DNA of 64,000 bases from Neoconidiobolus thromboides FSU 785 (GCA_025603075.1 MU626272.1:62001-126000); one strand, 5' to 3'; positions 46,319 to 53,231 are shown, counted from the stretch's first letter. Translations and numbers: made by a program. The notes: a model not told the origin generated them from the letters alone.

Positions 46319-46754
46319 AGCATAATTATAGTTATGTAATATTTGGTATATTACAGAATTTATAATTTATTTAAGTGAAAAGCTAAACAGGGATAAGGCT
46401 CATATAATTCTATATTTTTGATTCCAAATCTTGAAATTATCTAAAAGAGGCAAATTCATGTTGTATTCCTATATAATTATCTCATAAAGTTTAATAAATA
46501 GATAAATCAAATAACTTTTTATTTCTAAATGTGATTGAAATTAATCACTCAAAAATTAGCGAATTGTTAAAGCTTACAGCGCATTATGCGTTTTATGAGT
46601 TCAAGGTAAATATCACAAAATTTCAATTTTTATAGTTATGATATTGGTTTTTAGTCATTTAAAATTACTACAATAAAACATAAGCAAAAGTAATAGTATA
46701 AAAACAATCACCTAACAAGTAAATAAGAAATAATTGAAAACCAATTTATAAATT

Positions 46755-49700
46755 ATGACGAGTAGGGGCATATATAACAAAGAAGAGAGTATAAGATCTT
46801 GGAAAAAGTTACAAGATGAAAGCAGTGCGCCAAAGGTCGGTTTAGACGCTTGGCATAAACTGAGTAAAGATAAAGATAATAAAAATGAGAGGTAATTTTA
46901 CAATAAACATACTCAAATAATATTCTAATATAATTCTAGCAATTACAGTCACAATGACACAAACATAAATTTGAGTTATGGCTTCAAAGATCATAGGTTC
47001 GTTTTATTTTATTTTTCAACTTAGTAATCCAAAGTGCGATAGTGAAAAGTCGAATTGTTCTGGACACAAAGACAATAATATTAGGCACGTAAACCAAAAT
47101 AATGTAGCTAATGAAAAAAAGGTAAATTTTAATCTTTATCAAATAAACAATTATCTTATGATTTAAAAAGATGAATAGCCAAAGTCCTATTGATAAGAGT
47201 AACAGTATGTATTTATAGATATGATCAATTTCCTGATATGTATTTTTTAGATTTCGCATACAGCTTTAAATCCTCAATTATAGTTAAATTAAACCAAAGG
47301 AGAATAAATTTGAGCATTTTGTCTTCAAATAGTAGGAAGTTATTAAAAACATTTGATATCCATAATAGTGACTTTGATGATTATATCCCATCTAAAATGA
47401 GATCCGCTTTTATATCCCCAATTAATACCTTGTCAAAAGTTACAACATTTTTTCATTGTATAAGCAAACTTAAGCCAGCTCTAGGAATTCAATATTTAGT
47501 TAACCATTACAGTGAAATAGAGTTTTCATTTGATTATTATTTACCTGAGGTTATTTCCACAATTTTACAAACATTTAACCTATCAAATTTACTAAATGAC
47601 TTGAGCAACTCCAACAATCATACTGATCTATTAAGGTTATTTACTAAAAACGAAAAATTTATAATAAAGTTTATTATGCATTTTAGATATGGTACACATA
47701 CCGACTTCGAGTTTTGGAATTTTATATGGTTTTATTTAAGTTTATGTATGTTTAATCCGGAGTTTATTCATCTAATAGAAGTAGAAGAGTTGATCAACAA
47801 GAGTTTGAGGTTAAAAAAGCCTACAAATAGTAGAATAAAGTCGGATTGTGAATCAATTATTGCATTTCTTCGAGATATTGAAATGATTTGTCAAATAGAG
47901 GTAGATAATAATAATGTCATCACAAACAATACTGGTTTATTAGACGAAGATGACAATGTTGAAGGATATAATAATTTTGGCTCATATATAGTAGATGGTA
48001 AAGAAAATGTTGACATTGATTCAATTGTTTATTTGTTGAAATATGTGGATGAGTTGCCAAACCTCCCTCAAACACTTTATGACTTAATATCTAAAGCTCC
48101 AGATAACTTCGCTTTTAAGCTATTTACAGAATACAATCAAAGAATATTAGAAAACGATGAGGGGAATACAGAGAAAGGCTATTTTTCGAAATCAAAGCTT
48201 GAGTATAAATACTATGTTTGGCATGAAATAAAGATCAGATGCGATTATTTTTTCAAAAAATTGATAAATTCAATTGAGGGCTATAATAGCTCAAATAACA
48301 GCGAAACAAAGCAGCCTATTTTAACTTTTGATGGACCAATATACCATATTGGGAATATTATCCCTAGCTATGATGTAAAAGTTAATAGAGAATTAAGGGA
48401 TTTTATTAAAAATGAGACATTAGTTATTTTATTTAGTAGAGAAAAATCAAAGGTTTCAAAGTATTTACTATACAGCACTGGAAATGAGTCGATTCATCAA
48501 AACGAAAGCATGATTTTTGGGATAATCTATTACAACACAGATCATAGTAGGATTCAAGATCAATACTATCTTAACCCACGCGAACCTCAATCTATGCGAC
48601 TAACTATCATTTCAGATTCGTTGGATCAAATTGATATTTCTAAAGAATACTATATTGTACTGACACATATAAACTATAGCTACTATAAATTGATAATTGA
48701 CAATGAAGATCGGTTTAGCAAAAGCTATTTAGCCAAGAGCTTTGATACTATAACAACGAACTTACTATGTGAAATTAAAAATACAGACTTGAGACCAAAT
48801 TATTTAAGGGATGTAAAAATACCATTAAATTTTTTATTTGAAAATCAAAATAATCTCAGAGCATCTTTCTTTTTAAAGTCGATCCCAGATTATCAAGAGC
48901 TTAATGAATTATCTAACATGCTCGTTGACGAATCTCAGTTTAATGCAATCAAGTTTATCTTAAGCAATAAAATAGCAGTTACAGCAGGTGACTTTAAAAC
49001 CGGGAAGACAGACTTAGCTATTATCACTGCATCTATTTTAGCAAGTAAGTTAAAAGAGTTACAATTTCCAGAACCAGTTGTAATTATCACGAATAGTGAT
49101 TCAAAGTTGTATAAAATAGTAGACAAACTTTCGATCTATTTTCCTGACATTGTTTGTATTAACTCAGAGCAATCTGAAATACCAGAAAATATCCAAATTT
49201 ATAATATTGATAATATAGCAAACAAAAGTTGGGACAGGATTGAAAAGAATACTTGGAATAAAATACAATTTAATAAAGAGAATCTGCTAGATGAATGGGA
49301 TAAAATAACATTTGTAAAAGAAAGAATCAAAGATACCTCCTTTTCAATTAATGCCTTTATCAAACTTCTTCCACCACATTTAGCTAATAATATTTTCCAT
49401 AGTGATCAACCTGAAAGATTTAAATCACATAGTGGAACAAATGAATTGGAAAAAATAATGTCCTGGTTAGAATATGAATCTACTGTCGAATGTATTGAAC
49501 CAATGAATGATTTGACTTTAATCATTGATCTCAAAGATCTTGCAACTGAACTGGATACTAATTTATGGTCTTATTTAGATACCAATTTGTGGGATCTTTC
49601 CTTAGTTAAAAGGAGAGAAGTATTTGTCAAGTTTGAAGATATCTTATTGAGGTGTATTCAGCTTTGTTACAATAGAATTGTTAAAGAGTTAAATAAAGTA

Positions 49701-52354
49701 TATACTGAAGTCGAAAAATTAAAATATGGTATCTGGAGAAAAGTACTGAATACAGTATCCATAATAGTATTCACAAATGCATCATTTACTGAAAATTATT
49801 CTATTTTACAACATCTGAATGTTCGGGTTGGCATAATACTGGAAACTGAGAAATTTAGTGATTCTAAATTATTAACACTAACGAATTCTTTAAGCTTAGA
49901 ACATTTGATTTTATTTGCAAACCCTTCACAATTAAATCCTTTTTCTTATTTTGGTAATTTGAAGTACAGGAATTATTGGGAGTTTAGCCTTGTTAAGAGA
50001 TTATTTTCTACCGAAAGTATAAGGACTACACTCTCAAATTGTTATACAAAAAATAGTGCATTATTACCCATTGTATCAAATTTACATCCAAAGTCAAAGT
50101 TAACAATTGACCACCATCCTTTAACATCCCTTAAAGGAGTAGCTAAGCAACTTTCTTTTGTCAATGTATCAAGCATGAAGCATGCTATATGGTTCAATAC
50201 CGTTGAAGCAAAATTTATTGCTAGATTTGTGATATTTTTATATCAGCAAGGTTATACACAGGATGATATAGCAATATTTTCTTTGAGTTACAGCCAGGGG
50301 AAAATTATCATTGAAGCGCTTTTAAAAATGTTTAAAGTGTCCGAAAAACACCAACTTCTAGATAGAGAGAAAATAGGCTTACTGCCAACAGTTTATTCAC
50401 CTGGATATGAAGGTGGAGGTACATTCAAAATAGTGGTTGTTTCATTAATTTTTGGTAGAGAGCTCCGAAAGAACGATAACATTTCCTGTGTGAAGTTTGT
50501 GAAAAGCGCTTTGTTTTCAAGCCTTGAAAGCGCGACTATCTTTGGCGATGAATCGTGTTTTTCAAATGTCAAAGAATGGGTAACTTTTATGGAATTACTC
50601 AAAGCATCAGGTATTTTAGCCATTAAGTTTGTTTTGTTTATTGACCCTTTTTAGGAAATGTTACCGAATATTTAGAGTTAAGATGTCAAAGGCATACACA
50701 TACTGTAAATAAAGTTGATCACGATTTTGCATTTGATAAGGTGTGTGAATATGGTGGCTGTTTGGTAGTAATTAATATATTTTGAATTAGCATATATTTA
50801 TTTGATATTTAGGAAAAATGTGATCAACGATTAGCTTGTGGTCATATGTGTAGCCTTTTATGTCATCCATGGTTTCATGATAATTTGATGTGTCAGAAGC
50901 CATGTAATCGACGAAAAATATATGATTGCGGGCATATGTGTATAAATAAGTGTTTTGAATGTAAAGAAAAGGGGTGTCCTCCATGCGTGGAAAAAGTAAA
51001 TGCTAGACTTCCTTGTAACCATACATTTAAAGTTCAGTGTTCAAAAAAGTTAGTTATTGATGATATTGAATGTCAAGAGTTAGTAATTATTAAATTGCCT
51101 GGTTGTGGTCATGACTATACTATTGAATGTTTTAAATCAAATAACGATGATATATTATCTAGAATAAAATGTAGGGAAAAGGTTGAAAAAGAATTAGAGT
51201 GTGGTCATATAATCAGTGGAACATGTTATAAAGATATTTCATGTAATCAGGTATGTTTAAAAAAATTGGAATGTGGCCACTTTTGTCAAAGTAAGTGCGG
51301 GACAACGCATTCACATGATCGAAAATATTGTAAACATGATTGTCCCAAGGTACTTTTATGTGGTCATATGTGTCAAATGGGTTGTAGTTTACCTAATAAG
51401 CATACACAGTTTTGTAAAGAAAAGTGTAAGATTTGTTGCCCACATAAAGTTTATTGTCCAAAGTTATGTTATGAAGCTTGTATTGAATGTATTGAACCAT
51501 GTATATTTGGATGTAGGCATCAAATATGCCAAAAGTCATGCTCTGAACTGTGTGATCGTTTGCCATGTCAAAGAAGATGTGATAAAGTATTTGACTGCAA
51601 GTAAGTTTTATCAGGCTATTATAAAGTTTTATTAAATTATTTAGTCATCAATGTGTTGGCTTTTGTGGGGAACCATGTCCGCCATGCAATAAATGTATTT
51701 CTATGGAATGCCCAATTTCACTCCATCAGTTATCTGATATTAATTTAGATAATAATGAGTTACTTTATATGTTACCAGATTGTAATTGTGGTAAGTTAGT
51801 ATTTTATATATACCAATCCTATATTAATTCTATTTTATAGTTTATTTAGCTTCTTATTTAGATAATTATTTTAAATTTAATCCATCTAATAATGATGATA
51901 CAATAATTAAAATATGGTCTTGTCCAAAGTGTCAAAAGAACATAATAAGTGCTCCGAGATATGAAAGCTATATTAAAAAAGGATTAAATGATTTTTATAA
52001 AACAAAAACAACTATGTTACAAGGATTAAATTCGCTCACAAACAAGGAAAAGGATCAAATTATATTAGCTATGGCATCCACTGTTGATTTAGAAGTTTAT
52101 GATATTGTGGGTGGTAGATGGTTTAAATGTCCTAATAGTCATCCTTATTATATAGGTAATAATAGATTAATAACATGATTGTATATGTATTTATTAAGTA
52201 ATTCTAAGGTGAGTGTGGTGGTGCTACTGAAATATCCAATTGTCCAGAGTGTAATGAAGTAATTGGCGGTACAAAACATAAAATCGTATCAAGTAATGCT
52301 TTTTTTGGGGAGTTTGATCACTCTGAGAAACCTGCTTGGCCTGGACAAGAATAA
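46755..52354 (+). CDS. ZNFX1-like protein: degenerate SF1 (Upf1-like) helicase, NFX1-type zinc-finger array, C-terminal RZ finger; multi-exon
   Basis: Order of helicase-derived segments matches ZNFX1/Hrr1; repeated LxCGHxC motifs; WFKCPNSHPYYI-GECGGA...CPEC..IGG..H; 5' exons approximate. Confidence 0.88.
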
Positions 52355-52457: not shown

Positions 52458-53231
52458 TTAAATATCTTCAAATTCTATTGCCTCATCTTCCCATAAACCA
52501 ATAGGCTCTGTATTTAATATACCATAACAATTAGCTAAGTTAACAAAGGATAACTTTGGCATCTGTTTTAATAATTGAACACTATTGTCAGTTATTAATT
52601 CACAATTTTCTAAACTTATCTCTCTTAATGTTGATTTACATTTTATTAAAATTTGTTTTAATTCTTCATCTTCTATATTAGTATCCGTTAAATCTAAATA
52701 GATTAAATTTTTACATGAAGAAATAGATTGAAATCCAGATTTATTTGATTTAATACCTTCGACACCCAATCTCACTAACTGATTGTTATAAGCTTTAGTA
52801 ATTAAAGATAAGCTAAATGAATTCAGTTTGCACAATGGTAAATTTAAATCTTGAACATTAGGACAATATTTAATTAGTTGATATAAATGTTTATCAGTAA
52901 TTAAATTCCAACGTAAAGGTACAATAGCTAAATCGACTTTTTTAACCAATCTACCAACATTATTGTATAATTTTTTAACGTTTTTACTATGAGTATTTTG
53001 TTGTTTTTCAAAGGTGGAAGAAGTGGAAGATAATTTTAGACTATTTAAAAAAGAGGAGAATTGGTTACATGTAGTGAAGATGGGGGAAGTGTAGATACAA
53101 GGTAAGGAAACTTGATACCATAATTTATTGAGTTGAGATATGGTGTAAAGATCAGGAAGTGTTAAATAGCTGCAGATTAAATCTACTAATTCAATAGGTA
53201 ATGATTGGGATGAGCTTGATGAAAATGCCAT
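52458..53231 (-). CDS. F-box plus LRR (RNI/Amn1-like) protein, intronless
   Basis: LPIELVDLICSYL..LNKLWYQVSLPCIY; CPNVQDLNL, CKNLIYLDLT, LREISLENC, LSFVNLANC. Confidence 0.88.
   Translation of the reverse strand: MAFSSSSSQSLPIELVDLICSYLTLPDLYTISQLNKLWYQVSLPCIYTSPIFTTCNQFSSFLNSLKLSSTSSTFEKQQNTHSKNVKKLYNNVGRLVKKVDLAIVPLRWNLITDKHLYQLIKYCPNVQDLNLPLCKLNSFSLSLITKAYNNQLVRLGVEGIKSNKSGFQSISSCKNLIYLDLTDTNIEDEELKQILIKCKSTLREISLENCELITDNSVQLLKQMPKLSFVNLANCYGILNTEPIGLWEDEAIEFEDI

Follow-up and report, generated by a model that had tools for sequence, protein, structure and literature searches.

Gene structure, transcript and family placement

The gene on the forward strand of the window (64,000 nucleotides of the Neoconidiobolus thromboides FSU 785 genome, with positions counted from the first letter) corresponds to the JGI model K502DRAFT_323033, a protein of 1630 amino acids. 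Its features are collected in Table 1; protein residues follow the numbering of P0001, whose first residue is number 49 of the open frame supported by RNA. The gene is expressed and spliced. A 5322-nt spliced contig from RNA run X1 is 100% identical to the gene, begins at 46653 and lacks eight GT-AG introns. A contig from run X6 represents a relative of about 8% divergence, in which the identical introns are absent where they could be scored, and no indels with respect to the gene were found over 3 kb of the helicase. The introns flanking the large exon 4 (47199-47250 and 50609-50652) are spliced out in the RNA contigs. The preliminary description had the gene begin at ATG 46755. This ATG falls in the 5' leader and may mark a uORF; after excision of the RNA-supported introns its frame differs from that of the main ORF. 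The JGI start is ATG 47171, inside exon 3, with ATG 46978 as the alternative CDS start; the stop had been placed correctly. Exon 4 holds 1118 full codons and 0 stops, compared to 53-143 stops in the other five frames. The exon described earlier as uninterrupted and 1154 aa long is indeed open, but that length belongs to the stop-to-stop ORF 47190-50654. The whole coding frame runs for 1678 codons without a stop in a genome of 27% GC, where the other frames meet about one stop per 8-20 codons; its full-length product comprises about 1630-1680 aa.

The human ZNFX1 structure 9q9z_A matches the gene with an E value of 1.6e-23 (HMMER), in an alignment that continues from motif II into the zinc-finger stalk. 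The motif register was set by HMMER against 9q9z_A and by MAFFT alignments with 47 and 86 relatives. Over the C-terminal 506 aa, identity to Mucoromycota ZNFX1 orthologues amounts to 42-47%, with E values as low as 5e-137, and in the tree of this part the gene is nested with all Mucoromycota orthologues (clade support 96). The assignment to the ZNFX1 family is borne out by the 9q9z_A match, by the alignments with relatives and by the conserved columns of the stalk, Miz-like domain and RZ finger. No second ZNFX1/Hrr1-type gene was found elsewhere in the N. thromboides genome, of which this RZ finger is also the only one; four other SF1 helicases of the genome are better matches to a canonical chytrid ZNFX1 helicase than K502DRAFT_323033 is. 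As the sole ZNFX1-type gene in the genome it has no paralogue to act for, which makes the decoy function suggested at the outset unlikely. K502DRAFT_323033 is the single ZNFX1 orthologue of N. thromboides, with what appears to be the complete ZNFX1 architecture.

Table 1. Coordinates of the ZNFX1 gene and its domains and motifs in the window.
Feature	Position	Strand	Remarks
5' leader	46653..46977	+	exon 1 46653-46889, intron 46890-46937, beginning of exon 2; from the run X1 contig
Possible CDS start region	46978..47198	+	ATG 46978 in exon 2 (to 47115), intron 47116-47164, exon 3 47165-47198
Large exon 4	47251..50608	+	N-terminal helical region, 1B-like barrel, whole SF1 core with 1C insertion
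All-alpha helical-repeat region	47418..48293	+	P0001 66-357; AF2 pLDDT ~70-90 for 66-232, lower beyond
Beta-rich region	48360..48674	+	P0001 380-484; five strands in AF2 model, pLDDT 50-80
RecA1, N-terminal part	48900..49202	+	motif I GDFKTGKT and motif Ia; AF2 pLDDT >90
Motif I GDFKTGKT	48987-49010	+	K595, T596 retained; Pro-Pro-Gly lost
1C-type insertion	49203..49727	+	P0001 661-835; long, helical, as in ZNFX1/Hrr1; W748, W790, R797 retained
RecA1, C-terminal part, and RecA2	49728..50597	+	carries the eroded motifs; confident predicted fold, top match 9q9z
Motif II	49839-49844	+	L873-E874; first Walker B acid lost
Motif III	49917-49931	+	A899-N900...Q903
Motif IV	50031-50054	+	C940/T942; Gln/Arg/Met replaced by Cys/Thr/Lys
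Motif V	50397-50420	+	Asp/Glu lost
Motif VI	50496-50519	+	F1092, S1099; both arginines replaced by Phe and Ser, including the human R1223 equivalent
NFX1-type zinc-finger stalk	50598..51753	+	P0001 1126-1465; end of exon 4, exons 5-6, part of exon 7
Miz-like (SP-RING/U-box-like) region	51754..52043	+	P0001 1466-1545; interrupted by intron 51790-51839
RZ finger	52110..52300	+	P0001 1568-1613; split by intron 52154-52206; Pfam PF20173
Stop codon TAA	52352..52354	+	from the residue map

Helicase core and N-terminal region

The six motif strings on which the preliminary description was built all lie within ORF 47190-50654 and in the register it had assumed (HMMER, MAFFT). The claim that the catalytic motifs are eroded holds for most residues of the hydrolysis network, but the Walker A essentials, the catalytic glutamate and the motif III glutamine remain. 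Walker A should not be counted among the eroded motifs, as GDFKTGKT still fits GxxxxGK[ST] and the loss is limited to the SF1-typical Pro-Pro-Gly. The acid that precedes the Walker B glutamate is lost (L873), while the glutamate itself is retained as E874, at the position of E1007, the catalytic residue of human ZNFX1 (10.1101/2025.10.14.682297). The Gly-Asp of motif III has become Ala-Asn, whereas its glutamine persists (Q903). The Ser-Gln ahead of motif I is also retained. The position of the RNA-stacking Y1043 of the human protein is occupied by glycine, with Y909 and F910 adjoining. Judged at the sequence level against the SF1 motif set for catalytic competence, motif I alone is essentially intact.

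The extent of the loss was evaluated over conserved alignment columns; the motif table comprised 48 sequences. K502DRAFT_323033 retains 47 of the 91 family-conserved helicase columns (conservation of at least 80%), the lowest count among the 87 rows (median 83). Counted per domain, conserved columns are retained at 23/43 in the helicase, compared to 84/88 in the stalk, 15/16 in the Miz-like domain and 34/35 in the RZ finger. The RecA lobes are 18-24% identical to those of orthologues. The lost motif residues suggest loss of ATPase activity. Since the P-loop lysine and threonine, the catalytic glutamate and the motif III glutamine survive, the protein may bind ATP and perhaps hydrolyze it weakly, slowly or upon stimulation by a partner.

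The structure prediction called for earlier returned a retained helicase fold. The AF2 model of the core (pLDDT 84.9, pTM 0.85) has the ZNFX1 core of 9q9z as its top PDB match (Foldseek, E 3e-21), followed by Aquarius and Upf1, so that 9q9z is the best match in the PDB by both sequence and fold. Pfam AAA_11 and AAA_12 match below cut-off (E 0.005 and 0.05, respectively). Because the model draws heavily on aligned sequences of active relatives, it cannot prove that the divergent sequence folds alike. The combination found here, a predicted helicase fold, lost catalytic residues and a gene that is maintained and expressed, is that of a predicted pseudoenzyme, here a pseudo-helicase.

Upstream of the core, armadillo or other N-terminal homology is undetectable by sequence, and no Pfam match, including PF25396, was found in this region of P0001; a language-model lead connects it to ZNFX1-domain clusters (score 0.95). 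Its AF2 model (pLDDT 63) shows helices over residues 66-357 and strands over 380-484. The helical repeats may correspond to the armadillo domain through which ZNFX1 dimerizes, with weak fold matches to Aquarius (E 1e-3) and ZNFX1 (E 0.025). The beta-rich region is likely the counterpart of the 1B barrel, which in canonical members is PF25396 and lies at an equal distance upstream of Walker A.

Zinc-finger and predicted ligase domains and their rate of evolution

The stalk follows directly after the helicase, in unbroken alignment to that of 9q9z (HMMER), and it contains introns 50609-50652, 50764-50811 and 51601-51644. It is 40-43% identical to the stalks of Mucoromycota orthologues. All 67 of its conserved Cys/His columns are retained, in agreement with the earlier statement that the NFX1 zinc fingers are intact. 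Among the columns retained in the Miz-like region are both cysteine pairs, Cys-x-Cys and Cys-Pro-x-Cys; no residue could be confidently matched to human F1575, which binds the E2. The RZ finger, too, is intact as described. It matches PF20173 with an E value of 1.2e-19 (70 bits against a cut-off of 27) and has its four zinc ligands (C1574, H1578, C1594 and C1597), the nucleophile C1585 and the base H1606. Taken in sequence order, C1574/H1578/C1585/C1594/C1597/H1606 align with human C1849/H1853/C1860/C1869/C1872/H1881. Over the stalk, the Miz-like domain and the RZ finger together, 76 of 76 conserved Cys/His columns are present.

In this lineage the two halves of the protein evolve at distinct rates. 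With the tree topology fixed, the gene's terminal branch measures 2.60 in the helicase against 0.86 in the C-terminal part (ratio 3.0); the ratio in animal, chytrid and protist ZNFX1 is 0.5-0.6. The helicase branch is the longest in the family, and the ratio is the highest among the longer terminal branches. This three-fold acceleration points to relaxed constraint on catalysis. A crude dN/dS of 0.4-0.8 was obtained, which is not significantly below 1 and derives from 39 listed differences, most of which fall within the variable 1C insertion.

Proposed function and relation to other ZNFX1 systems

The gene is probably a ligase on a helicase-shaped scaffold, given that most residues for the use of ATP are lost and those of the zinc fingers and the ligase are retained. 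In the reading that we favor, with moderate confidence, an expressed and intact ZNFX1 carries an eroded helicase network and a bi-catalytic Miz and RZ ligase on the zinc-finger stalk. The core would keep its fold and P-loop while lacking the Mg-coordinating Walker B acid, the Gly-Asp of motif III and, in motifs IV and VI, the residues that sense the gamma-phosphate, losses that most likely uncouple ATP hydrolysis from RNA translocation. The activity under selection would be that of the ubiquitin ligase, and the helicase-shaped part may be a static module for RNA and/or nucleotide binding and for assembly. Loss of ATPase activity, continued RNA binding and ubiquitin ligation are predictions for this protein, and so is any part that it may play in RNA silencing or defence. 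Human ZNFX1, for which the Miz-like domain and the 1C insertion were defined, supplies precedents: its Miz and RZ domains each form an E3 module in their own right, the gamma-phosphate is bound by R1223 of motif VI, a residue that is substituted in the deleterious patient allele R1223Q, and the helicase-domain patient mutant L1051P retains auto-ubiquitylation (10.1101/2025.10.14.682297). The retention of E3 activity by L1051P makes a ligase on a dead helicase mechanistically plausible.

Three other explanations were weighed. The protein could still be an active, if non-canonical, ATPase or helicase, for which the retained P-loop lysine and threonine, catalytic glutamate and motif III glutamine would suffice. 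The lost arginines and Walker B acid would then be replaced by other basic residues, such as K592 in the P-loop or K943 where motif IV lies, or by a partner protein. The intact GxxxxGKT, E874, Q903 and the Ser-Gln before motif I favor such an enzyme, as do the high-confidence fold predicted around all motifs and the Walker B of ZNFX1 itself, which is already deviant (EE instead of DE). Six independent elements have nevertheless been lost together (the Walker B acid; the Gly-Asp of motif III; the Gln/Arg/Met of motif IV; the Asp/Glu of motif V; and the equivalents of both motif VI arginines, at 1092 and 1099), and one of these arginines corresponds to the residue altered in the human R1223Q loss-of-function disease allele. 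Together with the accelerated evolution of the helicase half, this makes continued activity rather unlikely. Nor do we consider it likely, to a slightly smaller degree still, that the helicase-shaped region is a mere spacer or oligomerization body that binds neither nucleic acid nor nucleotide. A helicase frame could persist merely through the E3 modules downstream in the same ORF, the identity of the RecA lobes is low, dN/dS in the sampled stretch is indistinguishable from 1, and the helicase, 1C and armadillo parts of human ZNFX1 also mediate polymer contacts. Yet the surviving columns are non-random: the P-loop, the catalytic glutamate, S922 and R926 of an SLFERL-like element, N992/E995/A996 of an Asn-x-x-Glu-Ala element and the 1C tryptophans are what one would expect to persist in a fold that binds a ligand, and the region of about 700 aa shows no shortening deletions and no indels with respect to the 8%-divergent relative.

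A decaying ZNFX1 copy, that is, an incipient pseudogene, is very improbable and was rejected, although many catalytic residues are lost and the helicase branch is so long. The preliminary description had tied that outcome to a dN/dS near 1 together with absent expression; dN/dS in the sampled stretch is not distinguishable from 1, but an expressed transcript was found, with all eight introns correctly spliced. The 1678 stop-free codons in an AT-rich genome, the complete set of Cys/His columns in a constrained C-terminal half, the relative of 8% divergence, likewise spliced where scorable and free of indels over the stretch compared, and the presence of this one copy only in the genome all speak against decay.

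Human ZNFX1 (9q9z; Naydenova et al. 2025, 10.1101/2025.10.14.682297) and the N. thromboides protein appear to share one domain order, from the N-terminal helical region through 1B, the Upf1-like SF1 core with its long 1C insertion and the rigid stalk to Miz and RZ, and the zinc ligands, nucleophile and base of the RZ finger and the Cys/His columns of the stalk are all conserved between them. They differ in the ATPase network, which is eroded in N. thromboides (the Walker B acid, the motif III Gly-Asp, the motif IV Gln/Arg, motif V and the motif VI arginines), and in the helical Miz-RZ linker of about 200 residues of animal ZNFX1, which is absent here as in all zygomycete orthologues. Caenorhabditis elegans ZNFX-1, Schizosaccharomyces pombe Hrr1 and Neurospora SAD-3 are ZNFX1-family helicases that act in small-RNA pathways. 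All three retain the helicase and belong to one subfamily with the present protein, 1C-type insertion included, and their RNAi partners are present in the N. thromboides genome as one RdRP and two Argonaute genes, which are unlinked to the K502DRAFT_323033 locus. To our knowledge, Hrr1 has no zinc-finger/RZ tail. C. elegans ZNFX-1 is without an RZ finger (10.1101/2025.10.14.682297). N. thromboides presents the reverse pattern, keeping RZ and Miz and dropping the helicase chemistry. The inactive C-terminal cassette of Brr2 is a natural pseudo-helicase that functions as a scaffold. PriA of Deinococcus radiodurans is likewise a natural pseudo-helicase, a functional scaffold with a retained fold and degenerate motifs (PMC4504706). 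The N. thromboides protein resembles both in its predicted fold and degenerate motifs; it differs in superfamily and biology and in that its pseudo-helicase, whose inactivity is predicted, is fused to two ubiquitin-ligase modules.

The Mucoromycota orthologues (among them those of Lichtheimia corymbifera, named 'nfx1-type zinc finger-containing protein 1', Mucor, Rhizopus, Endogone and Rhizophagus clarus) are 40-45% identical over stalk and Miz and 61-66% over RZ, share the supported C-terminal clade and have the short Miz-RZ linker. The motif III glutamine is lost in all of them, and constraint on the helicase is relaxed clade-wide. Walker A is lost in 8 of 8 Glomeromycotina sampled and the catalytic glutamate in Endogonales, Absidia, Gongronella and Hesseltinella; most Mucorales retain an intact Walker A, DE and motif VI arginine. 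Neoconidiobolus, by contrast, kept Walker A and the motif III glutamine, and its losses are both different and more extensive (the first Walker B acid, the arginine of motif IV and both arginines of motif VI). A view of the gene as a lone oddity does not hold, for the Mucoromycota orthologues in the motif table lost ATPase residues repeatedly; as read from these sequences, the N. thromboides gene is the extreme case of a recurrent erosion of the ATPase site across the zygomycete orthologue clade. We tentatively suggest, as a possibility still short of probable, that ZNFX1 throughout this clade (Zoopagomycota and Mucoromycota) changed from an ATP-driven RNA translocase into a sensor or scaffold that serves the bi-catalytic Miz/RZ ligase and needs no hydrolysis. 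The site would have been disabled at different points in different lineages: Glomeromycotina would have lost the P-loop, Endogonales and Cunninghamellaceae-like Mucorales the catalytic glutamate, and Neoconidiobolus the arginine sensors together with the Walker B acid. The P-loop of N. thromboides would serve as a nucleotide-binding switch only. If this is true, the ligase, and not the helicase, would be the conserved core function of ZNFX1 in zygomycete fungi.

Gene model and transcript

In a word-index search the helicase region had a single match, the 1630-residue 'hypothetical protein K502DRAFT_323033 [Neoconidiobolus thromboides FSU 785]' (hereafter P0001), from an entomophthoralean fungus belonging to the Zoopagomycota. 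The window corresponds to C15:62001-126000 of a 24.6-Mb assembly with ~27% GC. Searches were performed with exon sequences or with P0001, the exons being joined only for the frame and for coordinate mapping. A 5322-nt contig of X1, a public sequencing run of the same strain, is 100% identical to the window and lacks the eight GT-AG introns of the ZNFX1-like gene. The public runs are presumed to be RNA, which is a guess, and intron-free contigs necessarily derive from spliced transcripts; the strain thus has a spliced transcript of this gene. Once joined, the exons read open from ATG 46978 to TAA 52352-52354 as one frame of 1678 codons, which is P0001 exactly from codon 49 (ATG 47171) on. The RNA-supported frame is open for 48 codons 5' of the JGI start (window 46978-47170), and the deposited JGI model may be N-terminally short.

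Introns and main exon of the ZNFX1-like gene, in window coordinates
Feature	Coordinates	Strand	Observation
Intron 1	46890-46937	+	GT-AG, absent from X1 contig
Intron 2	47116-47164	+	GT-AG, absent from X1 contig
Intron 3	47199-47250	+	GT-AG, absent from X1 contig
Intron 4	50609-50652	+	GT-AG, absent from X1 contig
Intron 5	50764-50811	+	GT-AG, absent from X1 contig
Intron 6	51601-51644	+	GT-AG, absent from X1 contig
Intron 7	51790-51839	+	GT-AG, absent from X1 contig
Intron 8	52154-52206	+	GT-AG, absent from X1 contig
Main exon	47251-50608	+	0 stops in 1118 codons; 53-143 in the five other frames

Two details of the preliminary description have to be revised. The ATG at 46755, proposed as the gene start, lies in exon 1 out of frame with the main ORF and is therefore part of the 5' leader, and the '1154-aa exon' is not the true main exon but an ORF counted from stop to stop (47190-50654). 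Within the RNA-supported leader, ATG 46755 opens a 46-codon ORF (46755-46895), which may be an upstream ORF. Runs X2 and X5, both of organism B, contain joints beyond the eight main introns, at window 46992-47039, 50554-50653 and 50717-50812. The joint in exon 2 skips 46 nt with GT..AG borders, and the other two, around introns 4 and 5, skip 98 and 94 nt with non-canonical borders. Alternative splicing, a second allele or an assembly artefact may account for these joints.

Helicase motifs and predicted fold

The six motif strings that had been read as those of an eroded helicase are all present in the window sequence. Their register was fixed by HMMER alignment to the human ZNFX1 chain 9q9z_A (E 1.6e-23), by a MAFFT alignment of 48 sequences and by alignment A1 of 87 helicase cores, with the human reference residues taken from the structure paper (10.1101/2025.10.14.682297). 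In motif I (GDFKTGKT) the Gly, Lys and Thr of the P-loop pattern GxxxxGK[ST] are still present, the SF1-typical Pro-Pro-Gly alone being lost. The motif II pair L873-E874 corresponds to human E1006-E1007, such that the catalytic Glu remains and the acid before it is gone; the DSSP strand V869-I872 of the AF2 model agrees with this register. The Gly-Asp of motif III is replaced by Ala-Asn, with Gln-Leu-x-Pro kept, and the Gln-x-Arg-Met of motif IV by Cys-x-Thr-Lys. The Asp and Glu of motif V are lost. In motif VI, Asn-Arg...Ser-Arg-Ala has become ...Phe...Phe-Ser-Ser, with loss of both arginines, including the equivalent of human R1223. This residue binds the gamma-phosphate in human ZNFX1 and is essential in patients, R1223Q being a deleterious patient allele (10.1101/2025.10.14.682297). 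The erosion is real, but it is less complete than had been stated, as the Walker A essentials, the catalytic Glu and the motif III Gln are kept. By these residue states, the nucleotide-binding half of the ATP site survives, whereas the Mg/gamma-phosphate-sensing half does not.

The AF2 model of residues 430-1140, which was built on A1 and leans on the family alignment, had a mean pLDDT of 84.9 and a pTM of 0.85, and confidence was high at all motif positions. In the PDB it matched 9q9z, the helicase core of ZNFX1, best (E 3e-21), with Aquarius, Upf1, senataxin and IGHMBP2 next in order. The N-terminal 600 residues gave a weak AF2 model (pLDDT 63) and weak fold matches. Residues 66-357 of this low-confidence model form a helical-repeat block and residues 380-484 a block of five strands, predicted to sit where canonical members carry the armadillo domain and the PF25396/1B barrel. 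A language-model search with the N-terminal part returned ZNFX1-domain clusters as nearest (score 0.95), which we regard as a lead.

The loss of conserved positions is concentrated in the helicase. Of the 91 helicase columns with at least 80% conservation in 86 other helicase cores, 47 are kept in P0001, compared with a median of 83 per row and with 62 in the next-lowest rows. Domain-wise counts on the 48-sequence set gave 23 of 43 conserved columns kept in the helicase (Cys/His columns, 1 of 1), 84 of 88 in the zinc-finger stalk (67 of 67), 15 of 16 in the Miz-like region (3 of 3) and 34 of 35 in the RZ region (6 of 6). Pfam detected the RZ finger in P0001 at 1.2e-19, with AAA_11 (0.005) and AAA_12 (0.05) both below cut-off. 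With a canonical chytrid ZNFX1 helicase core as query, four other SF1 helicases of N. thromboides ranked ahead of the ZNFX1-like gene. The gene is a ZNFX1 family member by architecture, as the pseudo-helicase interpretation holds, and lacks the family's competent ATPase motifs; the loss of ATPase activity that this interpretation implies is what we infer from sequence and predicted structure. Apart from the points corrected here (Walker A, motifs II and III, start codon and exon size), the preliminary observation largely holds, and its interpretation finds partial support.

Relatives, rates and genome context

Over its C-terminal 506 residues, P0001 shares 42-47% identity with the ZNFX1 orthologues of Mucorales, Endogonales and Glomeromycotina, the lowest E value being 5e-137 (best 120 of 375 matches). 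An exhaustive HMMER search gave no more than 14 relatives with E below 1e-10, of which the best had 26% identity; for residues 1-450 it yielded no match. The best 120 of 375 matches of the C-terminal half, within the limits of the length window and database content, included no closer relative from other Entomophthoromycotina or Zoopagomycota. The C-terminal maximum-likelihood tree placed the gene inside a clade (SH-aLRT 96) with all Mucoromycota orthologues and near its base, a position that fits a Zoopagomycota orthologue. Identity to the Mucoromycota orthologues is 40-43% in the stalk, 40-45% in Miz, 61-66% in RZ and 18-24% in the RecA lobes; among the Mucoromycota subphyla it is 41-46% in the stalk and 32-34% in the RecA lobes. 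With the topology fixed, the terminal branch of N. thromboides measures 2.60 substitutions per site for the helicase versus 0.86 for the C-terminal part. This ratio of 3.0, against 0.5-0.6 in animal, chytrid, Pygsuia and Rigifila ZNFX1, indicates that relative helicase constraint is about six-fold lower in the N. thromboides lineage.

Erosion of the predicted ATPase site is recurrent among the 38 Mucoromycota orthologues surveyed, a clade-wide pattern absent from the preliminary description. The motif III Gln is missing from all 38 and is kept by Neoconidiobolus alone. Walker A is destroyed in 8 of 8 Glomeromycotina sequences (P0007, P0013, P0018, P0020, P0032, P0038, P0040 and P0123), and the catalytic Glu is replaced by Ser in Endogone and Jimgerdemannia and by Thr, Ala or Ser in Absidia, Gongronella and Hesseltinella. 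At least five Mucoromycota lineages are without the motif VI Arg; with Neoconidiobolus counted, the tree requires a minimum of six changes. Within this family-wide trend N. thromboides thus stands at the extreme, with a different subset of residues lost. Walker A in Glomeromycotina reads, for example, Ala-Pro-Ile-Ile-Thr-Ser-Lys-Ala, and Asp-Glu and the RZ finger are intact in all eight sequences. The ~200-residue helical segment between Miz and RZ of animal ZNFX1 is absent from all zygomycete orthologues, including P0001 (1546-1570 aligned).

Rhizophagus irregularis has a canonical ZNFX1 paralogue (P0096), and N. thromboides is without one. An active paralogue had been proposed as an alignment partner; every probe (helicase exon, stalk exon, Pfam RZ) matched only this one locus, and the genome yielded neither a second RZ finger or NFX1 stalk nor a second helicase of ZNFX1 type. 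This makes a decoy role towards an active paralogue unlikely. Five other AAA_11 loci look Upf1/IGHMBP2/Dna2-like, that is, generic SF1 helicases; the single one searched against the PDB, on contig C68, matched Upf1, Dna2 and Sen1 best and ZNFX1 weakly. The genome encodes one RdRP and two Argonautes, making an RNAi setting for the ZNFX1-like gene possible. One Argonaute (Piwi-domain) gene and a gene for a Upf1-like SF1 helicase are ~10 kb apart on one contig (C68:46295-47194 and C68:57541-58884), neighbours that could be an RNAi-related pairing. The ZNFX1-like gene itself is flanked by an upstream gene on the opposite strand and by a convergent F-box/LRR gene at 52458-53231 (-), neither of which suggests a functional link. 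The end of the latter (Pfam F-box-like, E 3.8e-5) and the stop codon of the ZNFX1-like gene are ~100 bp apart, and the 3' UTRs of the two genes probably overlap or abut.

The gene is alive, being transcribed and spliced in this strain and open in a relative. Contigs of run X6 (organism C) diverge from the window by 7.7-8.6% over the exons of helicase and stalk and by 2-5% over those of Miz and RZ; they have the five C-terminal introns removed exactly and show 0 insertions or deletions over 3 kb of helicase sequence. Runs X2 and X5 each show two forms of the gene over window 48593-51337. One form is ~99-100% identical; the other diverges by ~9% (35 differences over one stretch of 380 nt, for example), and many of its differences are common to organism C. 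The samples may be a mixture of two strains or of two species, or may carry a pair of diverged haplotypes. A sample of 39 coding differences (40 of the ~505 differences to relatives), mostly in the 1C insertion, comprised 15 synonymous and 24 non-synonymous changes. The crude dN/dS was 0.43 with equal-rate site counting and ~0.7-0.8 after a partly circular correction for the observed, transition-rich spectrum, neither being significantly below 1; on this sample we make no claim of purifying selection at the protein level for the helicase. Since 1C is the most variable part of ZNFX1 everywhere, the figure says little on the RecA lobes. The open frame of the helicase part could be maintained merely through the ligase modules downstream, and for this reason retention of the fold and of ligand binding is no more than likely.

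Putative function and significance

Most likely, the protein would work through the Miz and RZ ubiquitin-ligase modules on a rigid zinc-finger stalk. The helicase-shaped body may supply binding (of RNA, perhaps of nucleotide) and self-assembly, rather than ATP-driven translocation. In human ZNFX1 the Miz and RZ domains are each catalytic, and the helicase-domain mutant L1051P keeps full auto-ubiquitylation (10.1101/2025.10.14.682297).

Recent work has established that ZNFX1 is an RNA helicase and at the same time a ubiquitin ligase with two catalytic sites. C. elegans ZNFX-1, with the helicase kept and, according to 10.1101/2025.10.14.682297, the RZ finger lost, has the reverse pattern to N. 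thromboides, which keeps RZ. Our literature search, which was in part too loose, found no paper on a fungal ZNFX1 with degenerate helicase motifs or on clade-wide erosion; as pseudoenzymes are common, the surprise of the finding is moderate. The ZNFX1-like gene and its zygomycete clade appear to form a natural separation-of-function series, in which the ligase modules and stalk are constrained and the ATPase site has been dismantled in several ways. If biochemistry confirms the prediction, the E3 function of ZNFX1 would be selectable without ATP-driven translocation, and the proteins of this clade would be ready-made natural mutants for dissecting helicase-ligase coupling. What role the protein has in RNAi-possessing fungi could be addressed in tractable Mucorales.
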